From assembly GCA_020184695.1 (NCBI GenBank), contig JAANOX010000278.1:434001-498000 (forward strand): a stretch of DNA of 64,000 nt. Reading direction: 5' to 3'. This stretch comes from Histomonas meleagridis 2922-C6/04-290x (taxonomy: Eukaryota > Protista > Parabasalia). The first letter of the stretch is position 1. The number at the start of each line of letters is the position of its first letter. Below the pieces are notes generated by a model. It was given only the letters and a program-made list of their open reading frames with translations. It was not told where the DNA came from and did no database searches. This document shows positions 34,221 through 40,033 of this stretch, one piece after another. A program made the position numbers and the translations under genes.

Positions 34221-34808
34221 TTACTCTTTCTTTTCTTCTTTATCTTTTTCCATCTTCTCGATTTGTTCCTTGTTGATTTGACGAGCTTCTTCGAATTTCT
34301 TCTTGAATTCTTGTGTGATTTCTGCTGTCTTGAAACGAACAGAAAGAACATCATGGGATTCAGTTCCATCAGCAAAATCAGTAGCAGTCCAAATCAAAGC
34401 ACGTTCGTTACCAGCGTGTGACTTAAGTTCCATCTGTGGAAGGATGTAATGATTTGCACAAACGCGGAATGTTTGGTTACGCCTCATTAAAATACGGCAT
34501 CTTCCTGTTTCTTTGCTCTTAAGGATTTTGATAAAGCCAACGCCACGTTCCTTCCATTCTTTGCTTGTTGAATCGAAACGGTAAAGAATTGCCTTATCAC
34601 CGAAAAGCTTGTCTTCTCCTGCATCTGGGTCTTCTTGTTCAACTGTTGAAGGGGCTTCTTTATGGCTATCATCTACAGCGTTTGCATCATCTTGAGCTTG
34701 TGTTGTTGTAGCTGGAGTTGCAATAACTGGTATTGTTGGTGTTGTTGTAGCTGGTTTCTCTGCTTCAGGTGTAGCTGGTGTTGTTGGTGTTTTGTCTGCT
34801 TCAGACAT
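34221..34808 (-). CDS. RANBP1: Ran-binding protein 1 (RanBD)
   Basis: LYRFD...EWKERGVG..KILK...RILMRR.QT..VCANH, W...DFADG and FKKKFEEA. Confidence 0.92.
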   Translation of the reverse strand: MSEADKTPTTPATPEAEKPATTTPTIPVIATPATTTQAQDDANAVDDSHKEAPSTVEQEDPDAGEDKLFGDKAILYRFDSTSKEWKERGVGFIKILKSKETGRCRILMRRNQTFRVCANHYILPQMELKSHAGNERALIWTATDFADGTESHDVLSVRFKTAEITQEFKKKFEEARQINKEQIEKMEKDKEEKKE

Positions 34809-34811
34809 TTT

Positions 34812-34837
34812 AATGTGAACGACCATGTATAACCGCC
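34812..34837 (-). promoter_or_regulatory. Core promoter: M3-like GGCGGTT plus Inr-like TCACATT
   Basis: Minus strand reads ggcggtt...tcacattaaaATG, matching Trichomonas core-promoter motifs. Confidence 0.55.
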
Positions 34838-34923
34838 AGTAAACGATCAAATCTTCCTGAAACAAAGTGACACGAAAATAAAACATTGAAAAACGATTAT
34901 TTTGAATATAAATTTTAGTAATA

Positions 34924-37900
34924 TTACTTCCAACGCTGGCGAAGTTGTGTGAGCCGATTCTTCAGCTCAAGGAAATTTTTAGCTTGTGTTGTGTTCGTCC
35001 GAGTATTTTGTTGTTCGTCTGTCTTTGTTGATGTGGTAGGTTGAGTATCTGTATTTGTAGGTTTTGGGGCAGTTTTCCTGGGGGAAGTCAACTGCTTTGT
35101 TACATTGTTCGGCTTTGTGTCACTTGTCTTTTGTAGTGATGAGTTCAACGGCTGAGAAGTATTTGTAGCTTTTAATGGGGATTTAGGAAGTGTTACTTTA
35201 GTTGAGCTCGAAACATTTGTTTTATTAGTTGTACTCATTGTTGTTGTAGTTACTGTCTGTGCTTTCTTTTTATTTGTCAATGAATTAATTAACGCATTAC
35301 ATAGTTTCGATCGAATGTCATCATGATTAAATTCTTTCATTTTATCTTTTGCAAATGTAATCACTCTTTGGATATCTGACTGCTGTTGCATGTCTTTAAG
35401 CTGATTAGCCAAAGCTACCCAACATTTACAATAAAATGAATCTGTAGGAATGGTTCCTCTAAAATTGCTCATTCCGCCGAGTAAACCATTGAATATTTCT
35501 ATCGGCGGCAATTTATTAAATAATTTGAAAATGATCGAATTCGTTGCTTGAGAAATACCTTCCATTAACACCAATTTTCTTTGCCATCTATTTGCAATGA
35601 AGGTCACTGCAAGTAATATTTTTATTAATTCTTCTTGATCAAAATTACAATAAATTATCATTTGATGAATCGCAATCATTACAAATTTCATTGAGACCCA
35701 ATCAGTATCACTTGATAATAATTCATAAAGTAATGAATTTAGAATTACATTACTTTTATCAATTATTGCTTTAGAATTAAGTTTCAATTGTTCTAATAAA
35801 TTTCGACATAATTTAATTTTCTTAACAGAATCCATTTTCGAAAAAGAAGTGAAATCTAAATCATTCGACATATCAATTGGAATTACTGATCTTGCAAGTT
35901 CTCTTTGATTTGGTGTCAATGATTTTATAAATTGTTCTTTTTCTGGTTTTGTCATTTTTCGATAAAGCATTGAAAGAGCGCCGCTACATGCAGCAGCTAC
36001 TTCAATAGATTTATGATCAACATAATTGATTATTTCTAAAAATATGGATGAGTTATTGTCATTATTTCCAATGGCAAATTGTAATTCATTAAAAAGATGT
36101 ACAAGTGATGTGGCATTACAAACATTAAGACATGAGCGGAGAACGTTAGAGTACTCTGATGGTTCTGAGTGCGTTCTCACGAAGAAAAGAAGGTCTAAAG
36201 AAGAACCAACAACTTGTGGAGGCTTCGATTCAATGCTCCAAAGAATAACAGGAACAAGAGATTCAATCTCTTGTTGTGAAATTAATTCTTCTTCAAAAAT
36301 GGTCATAAGAAAGTTAACACCTTCAACTATAACCTTGACATTCTTATCGAAAAATCGTGTTGATACCCAACGAACATATAAATCACTACATTGGAAAAAT
36401 GTGGATTGATCAGATTCATATAAAGAACGACTTTCATTAAGACTTTCAATTTGATCTGGTAAAAGACTAGAAAACATTTTGTCAAATATTGACTGAGGTA
36501 GAATTTGTTGTGCTTCTGCTTTTAATTTTCCAATAATTGTTGTGACATTTTGACGATTTGATATTAAAAACAATCCAAGATTTGGTTGTTGTGATTTTAG
36601 GCGTTTTATCTTTTTTGCTTGTGTTGGTGTAGAAATATATTTTGGGACATATATTTCTTTTTCTTTAACTTCTTGTTTTTCTTCATTAATGTTATTTTGT
36701 GCTTCTGCTTTATTTTGAACTACTGAACCTCTTCTATTTGGTTTCTTCGGTGATTGTGGTTGTGTATCTTTAGTTTCTTGTTTTTCTTTTTGTCTTTGGT
36801 TATTTTGGGGCGCCTCATCCTTAACGTTCTCCATGTGAGCGTTTATGTATCGTTGAGAAGCACTTGGCAAATTTTTAAGTGCTGCATTAAAAGAATCTGG
36901 AATTTCTTGTTTAATACAAGAAGCTACTTGTATAGCAATTTGTCTAGTTGAAGACACTCTATCTTCTAAACATTGTAAAGTAAAAGGTATTAATTTTTCC
37001 ATTTCATTTTGAGGTATTTCATTAATATGTGATCGAATCCATTTAATAATTTCAAGTCTAATATCAGGATTCGGCTTAAATGAAATGTTTGCAAATGATC
37101 TAACAAAAGGAGAAGGGGTTGCATGAACACAATAAGCATTAATTGTTTTTGTAGCTTGTTCTCTAATATTTGGTCTTTGATCAGCCCAATTTGTAACAAT
37201 TGCAGGTGCAATTGTATTAACATATTTTGATATACCTTTATCAGAAGCATTAGCGATTTGTTCTAAAACAGATAAAGTCCTTAAGACAAGATTCTTATTA
37301 CCATCGCCTAAATATTTCTTTAAAATTTTCATTAAATGATCTAAATCATTTGATGAAATTTGCTTGCATTTATTTAATGCTGTTTCAACATTTTCGATAA
37401 ATTCTTTTTGTCCTGCCCATTTAGTTGCATTTTCTCCTTCTTTTAGTTGTTCTTCTGTTAAAAATTTGGACATTTTTACTCTTACAATATTTGCTTCAAG
37501 TGGTTTATTTTTCGATGTATTTCTTTGCCGATAAAATGTTTTTAATGGTTCAGGTAAATCTTTTGCTGTTTCGAAATCTTTTTTAAGTCTAATTAATGCA
37601 TGTTCTGGTAAACCGGTTAAATAACTTTCGAAATTTTGACCAAAATATTTATATAAATATTTTGCAACAAGTGAAGCAGGTGTTTTTACTTCTGGTGTTT
37701 TATGTTGTAATAATGTAATCAAATAAGGAAAGAAATCTTTTTGTATATCACCTACACCGAATTGTTGTATAATTTCGATACATATATCTAATGCCGATTT
37801 AATTGTTGCTGAACTTAAACTTTTTACTCCTCTATTAGTACTACAAATTTCAAAAACTTGTTGAAGGACAAACGAAGGACATATTAACTCTGATATAATA

Positions 37901-39558
37901 AGAAGTAAATCATGAATTGGTTGTTTAAGTTGTCGCATTGATAATTTTTCGATAAGATATGGAAATATGATTGATAAAATACTTTTTCGTATTTTGTTCG
38001 ATTTAACAATTACATGTCGAATTATATCAATTATTACTTGGTTAACTCCAATGTTTGATTGATTAAATCCCGGTATTTTCTCTAATCCACGAATAATCGC
38101 ATCGCTAAGATCATTTAAATCTTTATATGTCGATAATTTATCTTGTAAATCATTTAAGCCGGAAATCTTTTGCTTAAAATTAGAATTTGATAGTTTCGAT
38201 TGGATTTCACTTGTTATAAATTGATTCCAATTTGATAATGAAGCATCTTTTGGTATAGTGGAATCAAAGTTGGTGTCTTTTTCGGTGTCGTTTTGTATTT
38301 GTAAAGGTGGAAGTGGTAATGATAGTATTTTTGGTGTGATAACTTCTTCGCTTTTATTGATGGATGCTGATGGTGCTGGAGCTGGAGTTGGCTGCGTTGC
38401 ACTTGTGGTTTTCATTGGTGAATTTTGCATTCGTGTGCTGGCTTTAAACGCTGATGCATCATCCAAAATGTTATCGAAATTGTAATCTGCTTTTGGAACT
38501 TCAATTTCTTCATCTTCTGTTGTTTCTTTTGGTGTGCTTCTTCTAACATTTCTCTTTGGCTGTGTTTGAACTTTTGGTTGTGTTTGAGCATTCGCTGGTT
38601 TCATTGGAGAGTTCTGCATCTTTGTGCTGGCTTTAAACGCTGATGCATCGTCCAAAATATTATCATAATCATAATCCGCTTTTGGAACTTCTATTTCTTC
38701 ATCTTCTGTTGTTTCTTTTGGAATGCTTCTTCTAACATTTCTCTTTGGCTGTGTTTGAACATTTGCTGGCTTCATTGGGGAGTTCTGCATCTTTGTGCTG
38801 GCTTTAAACGCTGATGCATCGTCCAAAATATTATCATAATCATAATCCGCTTTTGGAACTTCTATTTCATCTTCTGTTGTTTCTTTTGGTATATTTCGTT
38901 TGATATTTCGTTTTGGCTTTGCTTGTGTAGTTTTTGGTGAATTTTGTATGCGATTACTTGATTTAAATGCTGATGCGTCATCTTTTATTTGTTCGAATTT
39001 ATATTCTTTTTGTGGTATATTAATATCTTCATCATTTTTGTCTTTTATTTGAAGATTTTGATTCGGTTTTCGTGGCAGCTTCGGTGAGTTTTGCATTAGT
39101 AGACTCGGTTTAGATGGAAAAACTTCATCATTTAAATTATCAAAATCGTACTCTTTTTGAGGAACCTCAATTTCGTCATCATCAATAATCTTTTCTTTCG
39201 GAACATTCATTCGAATGTTTTTTCTTACATTTCTTTTTGGTTGTTGTTGTATCTTTGGGGAATTTTGCATTAAAGTACTTGATTTGAAGGCAGCAGCTTC
39301 ATCATTTAGATTATCAAAATTATAGCCTCTTTTTGGAACTTCTATTTCTTCGTTTTCGGTTTTTCTATTTTGAGATATGTTTTTTTCCTTTGATTGAATT
39401 GGCGAATTCATTACTTTAGTTGATTTTGTTGTTGGAAAAGCATCTTCTGTGAATGACTCTGGATAATAACCAGGTGGAGGATCATTTATTTCTGGACTAT
39501 CCAAAGATGTTGTTGATTTCTTCATGTTTTTCTGCAATTTTAAACGGACGTACTTCAT
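34924..39558 (-). CDS. XMAP215/ch-TOG/Dis1-family microtubule polymerase with an N-terminal repeat region
   Basis: HEAT/TOG blocks (SNFKQKISGL, GFNQSN..V, KW..QKE, LYVRWVSTRFFDKN resembling TOG5) and an S/T-rich tail. Confidence 0.85.
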   Translation of the reverse strand: MKYVRLKLQKNMKKSTTSLDSPEINDPPPGYYPESFTEDAFPTTKSTKVMNSPIQSKEKNISQNRKTENEEIEVPKRGYNFDNLNDEAAAFKSSTLMQNSPKIQQQPKRNVRKNIRMNVPKEKIIDDDEIEVPQKEYDFDNLNDEVFPSKPSLLMQNSPKLPRKPNQNLQIKDKNDEDINIPQKEYKFEQIKDDASAFKSSNRIQNSPKTTQAKPKRNIKRNIPKETTEDEIEVPKADYDYDNILDDASAFKASTKMQNSPMKPANVQTQPKRNVRRSIPKETTEDEEIEVPKADYDYDNILDDASAFKASTKMQNSPMKPANAQTQPKVQTQPKRNVRRSTPKETTEDEEIEVPKADYNFDNILDDASAFKASTRMQNSPMKTTSATQPTPAPAPSASINKSEEVITPKILSLPLPPLQIQNDTEKDTNFDSTIPKDASLSNWNQFITSEIQSKLSNSNFKQKISGLNDLQDKLSTYKDLNDLSDAIIRGLEKIPGFNQSNIGVNQVIIDIIRHVIVKSNKIRKSILSIIFPYLIEKLSMRQLKQPIHDLLLIISELICPSFVLQQVFEICSTNRGVKSLSSATIKSALDICIEIIQQFGVGDIQKDFFPYLITLLQHKTPEVKTPASLVAKYLYKYFGQNFESYLTGLPEHALIRLKKDFETAKDLPEPLKTFYRQRNTSKNKPLEANIVRVKMSKFLTEEQLKEGENATKWAGQKEFIENVETALNKCKQISSNDLDHLMKILKKYLGDGNKNLVLRTLSVLEQIANASDKGISKYVNTIAPAIVTNWADQRPNIREQATKTINAYCVHATPSPFVRSFANISFKPNPDIRLEIIKWIRSHINEIPQNEMEKLIPFTLQCLEDRVSSTRQIAIQVASCIKQEIPDSFNAALKNLPSASQRYINAHMENVKDEAPQNNQRQKEKQETKDTQPQSPKKPNRRGSVVQNKAEAQNNINEEKQEVKEKEIYVPKYISTPTQAKKIKRLKSQQPNLGLFLISNRQNVTTIIGKLKAEAQQILPQSIFDKMFSSLLPDQIESLNESRSLYESDQSTFFQCSDLYVRWVSTRFFDKNVKVIVEGVNFLMTIFEEELISQQEIESLVPVILWSIESKPPQVVGSSLDLLFFVRTHSEPSEYSNVLRSCLNVCNATSLVHLFNELQFAIGNNDNNSSIFLEIINYVDHKSIEVAAACSGALSMLYRKMTKPEKEQFIKSLTPNQRELARSVIPIDMSNDLDFTSFSKMDSVKKIKLCRNLLEQLKLNSKAIIDKSNVILNSLLYELLSSDTDWVSMKFVMIAIHQMIIYCNFDQEELIKILLAVTFIANRWQRKLVLMEGISQATNSIIFKLFNKLPPIEIFNGLLGGMSNFRGTIPTDSFYCKCWVALANQLKDMQQQSDIQRVITFAKDKMKEFNHDDIRSKLCNALINSLTNKKKAQTVTTTTMSTTNKTNVSSSTKVTLPKSPLKATNTSQPLNSSLQKTSDTKPNNVTKQLTSPRKTAPKPTNTDTQPTTSTKTDEQQNTRTNTTQAKNFLELKNRLTQLRQRWK
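38409..39492 (-). repeat. Six clear plus one degenerate copy of EIEVPKxxY(N/D)FDNxxDDAxAFKxSxxMQNSP
   Basis: Visible in the translation; the last three copies are nearly identical at the DNA level (38409-38880). Confidence 0.92.
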
Positions 39559-40033
39559 ATAAAACGGTTAAAGATTCAATTTGATCCTGAAATGATTTCA
39601 GCATTTACGTTTCAGTAATTAAAGTTCTACATAAATAAATGTTAGTAAAAATTAGCTAATGAATTTGATGGTATATTGAAAGGAATATTAATAGATTTTG
39701 GTTAAAAAATTGATTAATTTTCAACAAGATCTAGGATTTTTACTACATATATAAATAAAAATAACGTGCTTTGTCATGAAAAAAATTATAATTGTGAATG
39801 TTATTAGGAATTAGTTTGTTTCGTATAGGAGAAGTCGAGTTGTTTATGATTAATTTTGATTACATTTTATTGATAACTTTCCTAAAAAGTGTCACTGATT
39901 CCTAAGCGACCGTTTATATGAATTATTAACATCCAACTGTTCAATTTTCTTGATGACCAATATTCTCACATGTTTAAGTTATGAGTATTAATTTCTTATA
40001 AATTAAAATAAAATATATTTTTTCAATAATAAT

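Follow-up and report, generated by a model that had tools for sequence, protein, structure and literature searches.

TACC-type repeats at the N-terminus of a putative XMAP215/ch-TOG-family polymerase of Histomonas meleagridis

Introduction

Few partnerships in spindle assembly are as highly conserved as that between the TACC proteins and the microtubule polymerases of the XMAP215/ch-TOG family, and work on this pair has concentrated on the coiled coil of TACC and the tail of ch-TOG. The N-terminal half of TACC proteins carries repeats, for which we know of no agreed function; the repeat units of animal TACCs are presumably those called 'SDP repeats' in vertebrate TACC1/2. The XMAP215 proteins of model organisms start, to our knowledge, at their first TOG domain, TOG1.

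Here we describe a gene of the parabasalid Histomonas meleagridis 2922-C6/04-290x whose predicted product places an array of TACC-type repeats ahead of the TOG domains of an XMAP215-type protein. The gene lies in a stretch of 64,000 nucleotides (nt) of contig JAANOX010000278.1 (positions 434,001 to 498,000, forward strand), hereafter the window; coordinates are positions within it. An earlier interpretation of the letters of this DNA, here called the sequence-only reading, had proposed that TACC-like repeats are fused to a polymerase. What appears to be new is an XMAP215-family polymerase carrying TACC-type repeats, together with a shorter half-motif on the XMAP215 genes of several protist lineages; in the limited literature collection that was searched, no paper describes the unit outside TACC.

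Results

A repeat array lies ahead of the TOG domains

The ORF list and its translation give a single open reading frame (ORF) on the minus strand, 34924-39558, that encodes 1,544 amino acids (aa) and ends in a stop codon. The repeats lie 5' of the TOG domains and share their reading frame, uninterrupted by a stop codon; the product is assigned to the XMAP215/ch-TOG microtubule-polymerase family as a predicted parabasalid member with an N-terminal repeat array. A hidden Markov model (HMM) of the six clear units recovers all seven, the clear ones at 70-83 bits each and the degenerate one at 6.3 bits. The sequence-only reading had counted seven copies ahead of the TOG domains, at 38409-39492; six clear units and one degenerate unit were indeed found within the same ORF, and the span of 38413-39504 matches. 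The array comprises the following features, where the TACC-only HMM is the model described in the next section.

38413-39504, minus strand: repeat array of seven TACC-type units with spacers (aa 19-382), from the HMM of the units
39397-39504, minus strand: unit 0, degenerate, PPGYYPESFTEDAFPTTKSTKVMNSP (aa 19-54; HMM, 6.3 bits)
39253-39360, minus strand: unit 1, TENEEIEVPKRGYNFDNLNDEAAAFKSSTLMQNSPK (aa 67-102), best match of the TACC-only HMM at 25.1 bits
39079-39186, minus strand: unit 2 (aa 125-160), found by the unit HMM and the TACC-only HMM
38932-39039, minus strand: unit 3 (aa 174-209), found by the unit HMM and the TACC-only HMM
38773-38880, minus strand: unit 4 with an NSPMK end (aa 227-262), found by the unit HMM and the TACC-only HMM
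38602-38709, minus strand: unit 5 with an NSPMK end (aa 284-319), 91% DNA identity to the unit 4 period
38413-38520, minus strand: unit 6 with an NSPMK end (aa 347-382), 89% DNA identity to the unit 5 period

The unit is about 36 aa long and has the consensus EEIEVPK-x-x-Y-x-F-D-N-(L/I)-x-D-(D/E)-x-x-A-F-K-x-S-x-x-M-Q-N-S-P. Its elements follow in the order of an acidic patch, Phi-x-Phi-P-K, G-Y-x-(L/F)-D...N-L, an aromatic plug and K-(S/T)-x-x-Phi-x-N-S-P. The plug is (D/N)PF in TACCs versus AF or FP in the Histomonas protein, whose units read AAAF, SAF, VFP or AFP at this position. All seven units close with N-S-P, and exactly three of them continue as S-P-M-K (aa 260, 317 and 380), the full [ST]-P-x-[KR] consensus of cyclin-dependent kinases (CDK), as had been read from the letters. 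The spacers between the units measure 12-27 aa and are rich in K, R, P and Q.

The array grew recently through tandem duplication. Units 4-6 are recent duplicates, since their pairwise DNA identity is 84-91%, compared with 63-76% for pairs that involve units 1-3, either with one another or with units 4-6. At 38573-38889, Tandem Repeats Finder detects a period of 171 nt (94% matches), and one of the last three units contains an internal duplication of 6 aa. The earlier suggestion that the last three copies are still expanding is borne out by these values.

Pfam holds no model that covers the unit, either in the N-terminal region of the Histomonas protein or in the proteins hit by the profile. 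A match to PG_binding_5 on the N-terminal part (27.5 bits, cutoff 24.1) was regarded as spurious, because a bacterial domain is here matched by 45 residues of disordered repeat. The unit profile had no match at E<=10 among all chain sequences of the PDB. A word-indexed homology search with the N-terminal 420 aa returned zero matches, not even the protein itself, so the Histomonas protein is absent from that collection; the same 420 aa searched against a protein-language-model atlas gave a best score of 0.72, to unrelated disordered or repeat proteins, and were uninformative.

The unit matches animal TACC repeats in both directions

A profile of 36 positions (A1), built from the seven Histomonas units and 13 related segments of parabasalid orthologs, was searched against a representative library of 1.84 billion proteins with a cutoff of E<=1e-3. 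The search returned 23 proteins, including two orthologs, which leaves 21 non-self matches. Five of these carry the Pfam domain TACC_C (P0016, E 6.8e-15, with nine units; P0018, 4.9e-10; P0021, 2.1e-6; P0025, 8.6e-6; P0026, 1.2e-5), and two of the five, P0021 and P0026, also bear the Aurora-A-binding region of TACC3. By cluster look-up, the TACC_C matches correspond to TACC2-/TACC3-like proteins of Penaeus vannamei and Haliotis rufescens and to proteins of Palaemon carinicauda and Coregonus. The sixth TACC match, P0014, clusters with a Penaeus japonicus protein that NCBI names TACC2-like. Because TACCs make up a vanishing fraction of the library, at least six of them among 21 non-self matches are not a chance result. 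Retrieval of TACCs by a repeat HMM had been set beforehand as one of two tests of the sequence-only reading; it occurred here with five TACC_C proteins and one TACC2-like protein, and the reverse HMM and the profile comparison described below agree with it.

Nine further matches carry the unit without a recognisable domain in their gene models. In the four top unnamed matches (P0012, P0013, P0015 and P0024) no TACC_C was called, and a tblastn search of the 10 kb downstream, with DNA for two of the four, found none.

The TACC units read, for example, EEIIPPKKGYNLDFLDNLDDPNFNPFATKTAVSNSP in shrimp and PPKGTYELDFANLDSVNPFQTGGSKMQNSP in whitefish, next to EEIEVPKRGYNFDNLNDEAAAFKSSTLMQNSP in Histomonas, with the same elements in the same order; the vertebrate pattern given in the sequence-only reading fits the teleost unit PPKGTYELDFANLDSVNPFQTGGSKMQNSP. 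When an HMM was made from the seven Histomonas units only, 21 single TACC units scored 2-22 bits, most of them 12-22, while 10,500 composition-preserving shuffles scored by the same HMM reached a maximum of 14.7 and a 99.9th percentile of 9.6. At database scale, this HMM would still give E ~1e-3 for two TACC_C proteins, and two unnamed proteins that carry such units would reach E 1e-10 to 1e-15.

For the reverse search, a second HMM (A3) was built from 20 units of four TACC_C proteins only and run against 900 six-frame stop-to-stop pieces of the window and against 11 orthologs. Within the window it finds only this ORF (E 1.4e-23), in six units and over HMM positions 1-38; among the orthologs, Tritrichomonas musculus scored E 1.5e-6 and Tritrichomonas foetus weakly. 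Aligning A1 with A3 in hhalign gave a probability of 97.6% and E 3e-12 over 35 columns, with 43% consensus identity. Since the shuffle control, the reverse HMM and hhalign agree, the relationship does not appear to be compositional; at the level of sequence, the match to TACC units is specific, reciprocal and real.

The likeness to animal TACC repeats extends to the unit length of ~33-39 aa, to the order of the elements (acidic patch, PxK, GYxLD, NL, plug, K(S/T)...NSP), to the invariant terminal S-P and to the tandem arrangement, which lies in a region free of Pfam domains and predicted to be disordered. The two differ in the segment from the Y to the plug, which is 2-5 residues shorter in the Histomonas units, and in the carrier, which is here a polymerase without the TACC coiled coil. 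The TACC_C domain (PF05010) had no match in the whole Histomonas protein at E<=1, nor in its three parts at E<=10. Judged by these searches, the predicted protein is not a TACC, and what it has in common with TACCs is the repeat unit only.

The protein resembles XMAP215-type polymerases

The remainder of the protein is made up of the following features.

38251-38349, minus strand: pre-TOG segment, EEVITPKILSLPL... (aa 404-436), conserved in 12 of 12 sequences and predicted to pack on TOG1
37573-38250, minus strand: TOG domain 1 (aa ~437-662), from Pfam XMAP215_CLASP_TOG, AlphaFold2 (AF2) and Foldseek
36925-37482, minus strand: TOG domain 2 (aa ~693-878), from phmmer against the PDB and Pfam CEP104-like_TOG and HEAT
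36106-36537, minus strand: third TOG-like region (aa ~1008-1151), from phmmer against the PDB
34927-34974, minus strand: tail helix, FLELKNRLTQLRQRWK (...NRLTQLRQRWK; aa 1529-1544), from the pattern RLxxLRxR

Pfam assigns XMAP215_CLASP_TOG to aa 452-650 (E 2.1e-10) and CEP104-like_TOG to aa 726-878. TOG1 is modelled by AF2 with a predicted local distance difference test (pLDDT) score above 90, and its best Foldseek match is TOG3 of Msps (4y5j, E 8.4e-7, TM 0.77), which ranks above TOG1 of CLASP. In phmmer searches of the PDB, TOG2 (aa 693-876) is closest to TOG4 of ch-TOG (4qmi, E 3.8e-15) and of Msps (4qmh, E 9e-8), with CLASP as a weaker match (E 2.7e-4). The third region matches TOG5 of XMAP215 (9c13_E, E 3.7e-5), TOG5 of Msps (5vjc, E 3e-4) and TOG3 of ZYG-9 (2of3, E 0.01). 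The protein thus contains at least two tandem TOG (HEAT-repeat) domains, and these are nearer to the XMAP215 type than to the CLASP type in both sequence and fold. The earlier assignment to the XMAP215/TOG proteins stands on Pfam, on the sequences of solved structures and on Foldseek.

Besides the TOG domains, the Histomonas protein shares with the XMAP215/ch-TOG/Msps/ZYG-9/Stu2 family a K/S/T-rich linker between TOG 2 and TOG 3, as well as a helical C-terminal domain; after this domain come a disordered linker and a predicted terminal helix, whose RLxxLRxR pattern resembles that of the TACC3-binding helix of ch-TOG. It differs from the family in that its N-terminus is not TOG1 but a disordered extension of ~400 aa, and in having only three TOG-like domains. 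These domains (36106-38250) resemble TOG3, TOG4 and TOG5 of five-TOG proteins rather than TOG1-2, so the protein appears to correspond to the C-terminal half of a five-TOG polymerase and to lack domains of the TOG1-2 type. The tryptophan in the first helix of TOG domains has a role in tubulin binding and polymerase activity. TOG2 has K-W at the start of this helix, the W being invariant in the ortholog alignment (A2), and TOG1 has F there.

The tail helix is conserved as RLxxL(K/R)xRW (also LxxRLxxLKxRW) in nearly all parabasalid orthologs, and AF2 places it at the very end, after a disordered linker of 93 residues. As a pattern match alone, the spacing of its R, L, L, R and R equals that of R1938, L1939, L1942, R1943 and R1945 in helix H5 of ch-TOG. 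Helix H5 is the TACC3-binding element, and the mutation L1939A/L1942A abolishes binding (PMC11921806). The pattern suggests that a TACC-like partner persists in parabasalids. As the tail helix is apparently retained, the array probably adds to such a partner rather than replacing one.

The array itself was modelled with AF2 as part of aa 340-700, which includes only unit 6, on a shallow alignment of 12 sequences. Residues 340-403 have a pLDDT below 50 and make zero contact with TOG1, so a disordered string of short linear motifs is the best description of the array. The pre-TOG segment (aa 404-436) is predicted to pack on TOG1 (pLDDT 59-86), with a short strand paired to the end of this domain. 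No support was found for docking of the unit on its own TOG1, as the model leaves the unit unstructured, which is weak evidence against such docking.

A half-motif occurs in parabasalid orthologs and in other XMAP215 genes

The parabasalid orthologs, which include two annotated as 'TOG domain-containing protein', TRFO_04946 of T. foetus and one of T. musculus, are 37-49% identical to the Histomonas protein over the TOG part. One copy of [DE]-Y-[DN]-[FL]-x-N-L-P-P-E-A-F, corresponding to the first half of the unit, is present in 10 of the 11, directly before an EEPE(V/I)VPKILSL segment (EEPEVVPKILSL) and TOG1. The exception is P0007, whose gene model begins at EEPEIIPKILNL, just downstream of where the half-motif stands. 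T. musculus also has TFDIDFDDKNFNPFKTSSKMANSP, which is nearly identical to the teleost string ...NPFQTGGSKMQNSP; T. foetus has LDENFDPFKRSSKIPNSP, and other orthologs contain further pieces. The second half, (N/D)PFK...NSP, occurs in T. musculus, T. foetus and two others, and the Tritrichomonas orthologs, unlike the Histomonas units, do have NFNPF, NFDPF or NDPF. Unit 0 corresponds to the conserved DGYPSPSQFDDNYFPSSKRGKVANSP of the Tritrichomonas orthologs. Given that the half-motif is already present in the orthologs, the Histomonas lineage appears to have amplified a pre-existing element.

Two of the A1 matches, P0017 with four copies of GY-x-[IL]-D-[NA]-L-P-[PA]-[ES]-A-F-P and P0030 with 2-3 copies of GYDLDNLPPEAF, turned out to be the first exons of two XMAP215-type genes, which have ordinary GT-AG introns and lie on metagenomic contigs of eukaryotes. 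The half-motif exons lie directly upstream of ORFs that encode TOG domains, on the same strand. At these loci (L001:8001-15805 and L002:8001-11000) 2-4 copies of GYDLDNLPPEAF(P) make up the first exon. The ORF that follows in L001 encodes 2,276 aa, and across the exon junctions the sequence continues into the typical beginning of a TOG1. The whole gene encodes more than 2,276 aa. No named relative was found for either gene, the protein atlas giving the label 'Eukaryota', and the L001 protein is 21% identical to the Histomonas protein in its best-aligned TOG; it therefore belongs to another lineage. Taken at the level of sequence, the N-terminal motif is not peculiar to Histomonas, as at least its first half is found in 10 of 11 parabasalid orthologs and in two non-parabasalid XMAP215 genes, and its half-motif form extends beyond parabasalids.

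Two other short motifs were seen in these regions. SPPIPTLRN occurs near the N-terminus of orthologs P0002, P0004 and P0009 (aa 1-15) and, in three copies, of P0010 (aa 5-135); it is absent from the Histomonas protein. Some units have S-x-I-P before NSP in a basic, serine-rich context, which is the EB1-binding SxIP pattern; examples are RSSKIPNSP in T. foetus and KSKSQIPNSP in an abalone TACC, and such sites lie in P0002 (aa 160-172), P0005 (aa 4-12), P0021 (aa 433-545) and P0015 (aa 277-365). The Histomonas units read T-x-M-Q at this position.

Contigs of putative RNA runs bridge the repeats and TOG1

Contigs from four runs classed as RNA tile 34600-39741 at >=99% identity with zero joints. 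They do not represent genomic background, because their depth falls to zero past ~39850. Three contigs (38110-38564, 38204-38564 and 38287-38510) connect the last repeat with the pre-TOG segment, and the first two extend into TOG1 itself. The units and the TOG domains are thus very likely, though not proven, to lie on one mRNA. Repeats and TOG domains on different transcripts, the second outcome that would have counted against the sequence-only reading, are not what these contigs show.

Contig depth changes in a step at 37017-37775, the position depending on the run (34900-37775 high versus 37800-39740 low). Either the libraries are biased towards the 3' end, or transcription also starts inside the gene and yields a short isoform that lacks the repeats and TOG1.

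The first ATG is at 39558, and a second one, at codon 12 (MKKSTTS...; 39523-39558), lines up with the start region of ortholog P0003 (MKKTPP); both candidate starts lie upstream of every unit. One low-depth contig extends to 39741, ~180 nt upstream of the first ATG, and a leader of ~180 nt would be long for a trichomonad. A scan for bacterial-type promoters and terminators has no bearing on this eukaryotic gene.

Discussion

The conserved positions of the unit are an aromatic Y, an acidic/leucine stretch, another aromatic as the plug, a basic residue and the invariant S-P; such a set is typical of a docking motif that is switched by proline-directed phosphorylation, and the array is most likely a multivalent, phospho-regulated docking array. 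As an explanation of the locus as a whole, a TACC-type docking array on an XMAP215 polymerase is the one we consider probable. The units would act as short linear docking motifs, several of them presented together, and seven copies would give avidity. In animals, the same units would bring a factor to TACC; here, the array would bring this factor to the polymerase. A proline-directed mitotic kinase could switch the docking through the invariant S-P, which lies in a full CDK consensus in three units. As a result, the polymerase would be targeted to, or clustered at, microtubule-organising structures under control of the cell cycle.

Several points weigh against this explanation. Four of the A1 matches are clearly spurious (a cyanobacterial repeat, a zinc-knuckle repeat, a Cna_B pilin-type protein and a short low-complexity protein) at E 1e-7 to 1e-3. 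Whole-protein E-values are inflated for tandem-repeat proteins, because one weak match is counted many times, and single TACC units do not exceed 28-36 bits, a borderline score for a library of this size. The TACC-only HMM gives the two non-parabasalid half-motifs 3.7 and 8.4 bits, which is not significant; the lower score belongs to P0017, whose shuffles reach 9.3 bits. As these half-motifs go unrecognised, it is only by way of the parabasalid units that they are linked to TACC. The P and F of (D/N)PF are invariant in 20 of 20 aligned TACC units, and the Histomonas units have AF or FP instead; the partners may therefore differ if it is (D/N)PF that does the work in animals. At the transcript level, the four runs are assembled contigs whose RNA nature is the guess of the tool, none of the contigs covers the entire gene, so that the tiling is piecewise, and the depth is 10-20x greater across the 3' 2.2-2.9 kb than in the 5' part. 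The proposal of a single mRNA accordingly holds for the bridge from the last repeat into TOG1, which joint-free contigs cross, and falls short of proof for the gene as a whole because no contig spans it and because of this difference in depth.

As to the origin of the unit, a true relationship between the parabasalid and TACC repeats is favoured by the near-identical strings and by four elements that recur in an unchanged order across 35 residues. The unit may be an ancient eukaryotic docking motif (GYxLD...NL...F...K..NSP) for a conserved regulator of the spindle or the microtubule-organising centre, carried by either member of the TACC-TOG pair; we put this forward tentatively, as a possibility that we would sooner doubt than assert, and an Aurora-type kinase would be one candidate for the partner. 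That the parabasalid and TACC units instead arose independently, as composite linear motifs in disordered tails, through a fit to the same conserved surface or simply through similar composition, with no shared ancestor or transferred module, strikes us as unlikely. Convergence would suit units that are short, motif-like and disordered in the AF2 model, as motifs of this kind are known to arise repeatedly, and it would suit their patchy distribution, since the A1 search retrieved, besides XMAP215 N-termini, TACCs of animals only and none from fungi, plants or amoebozoans. The failure of the TACC-only HMM on the non-parabasalid XMAP215 half-motif and the replacement of (D/N)PF in the Histomonas protein point the same way. 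It accounts poorly, however, for four sub-elements with the same order and similar spacing over ~35 residues, for the hhalign probability of 97.6% at 43% consensus identity, for the far lower scores of shuffles of the same composition and for the near-identity of the T. musculus string TFDIDFDDKNFNPFKTSSKMANSP with the teleost ...NPFQTGGSKMQNSP.

Parabasalids live in animals, and a transfer from host to symbiont, in which a parabasalid ancestor captured a fragment of an animal TACC repeat and fused it to the 5' end of its XMAP215 gene, would explain why the full two-part unit occurs only in Histomonas and its Tritrichomonas-like relatives, with the first half alone in distant orthologs, and why the KMQNSP ending is common to a vertebrate TACC. 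We nevertheless hold it to be improbable. The first half stands at the same position in 10 of 11 orthologs that are 37-49% identical, and in two unrelated eukaryotes, so that the anchor motif predates any transfer; the repeat DNA also has the same low G+C as its surroundings, and no animal-like flanking sequence is present. Capture of an animal TACC fragment may apply to the second half of the unit, not to the first. The variation in copy number among orthologs, from 0 or 1 to 7, the recent age of the last three copies and the variable length of the spacers would all be expected of a lineage-specific, low-complexity spacer grown by replication slippage, whose similarity to TACC is functionally meaningless. 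Such neutral growth is very improbable in view of the core residues: Y, D, NL, F, K and NSP are kept in old copies that are 63-76% identical, while the spacers drift. It is also at odds with a motif held at the same place across orthologs with 37-49% overall identity, and with a match to TACC that is specific and reciprocal.

For the proposed docking array, some candidate partners can be named. The SDP repeat is reportedly the GAS41-binding region of TACC1/2. A review states that GAS41/YEATS4 interacts with human TACC1/2 (PMC10583379). NPF peptides of BORA and PYGO2 deplete Aurora-A and EH-domain proteins from cell extracts (PMC12808100; PMC12953601). By analogy, EH-domain proteins and Aurora-A are candidate partners of the unit versions that contain NPF or DPF; the lead is weak for the Histomonas protein, because its units have neither. 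The TACC and Tritrichomonas units, with NFNPF or NFDPF, are like the NPF/DPF short linear motifs (EH domains, AP-2, POLE2, Aurora-A; Bora), and an aromatic plug in a disordered mitotic regulator would be the same working principle, although this is a resemblance only. They differ in that the Histomonas protein lacks NPF/DPF and that the unit is far longer than a three-residue motif.

The sequence-only reading had called the gene a Rosetta-stone fusion, perhaps in the service of the extranuclear parabasalid spindle. A TACC-type repeat module does appear to sit on the polymerase, so the term applies in a loose sense, not in that of two interacting domains joined in one chain. It is no classical Rosetta stone, because the shared part is the N-terminal repeat of TACC and not the coiled coil that binds XMAP215, and because the polymerase also keeps a helix pattern like the TACC-binding helix of ch-TOG.

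The presence of the same unit on the polymerase of a distant eukaryote would tie its function to the polymerase-adaptor system rather than to roles of TACC that are specific to animals. The Histomonas protein, with seven units followed by TOG domains, would be a simple natural construct for studying what the unit does. Together with the half-motifs on two other protist XMAP215 genes, it suggests that the textbook statement that XMAP215 starts with TOG1 fails across eukaryotes. If the unit is indeed an ancient docking motif, animals would carry it on TACC and parabasalids on the N-terminus of the polymerase, with a shorter form on the polymerase in at least two other protist lineages. In that case, the parabasalid gene would reveal the function of the N-terminal repeats of TACC, and part of the job of the adaptor could be built directly into the polymerase.

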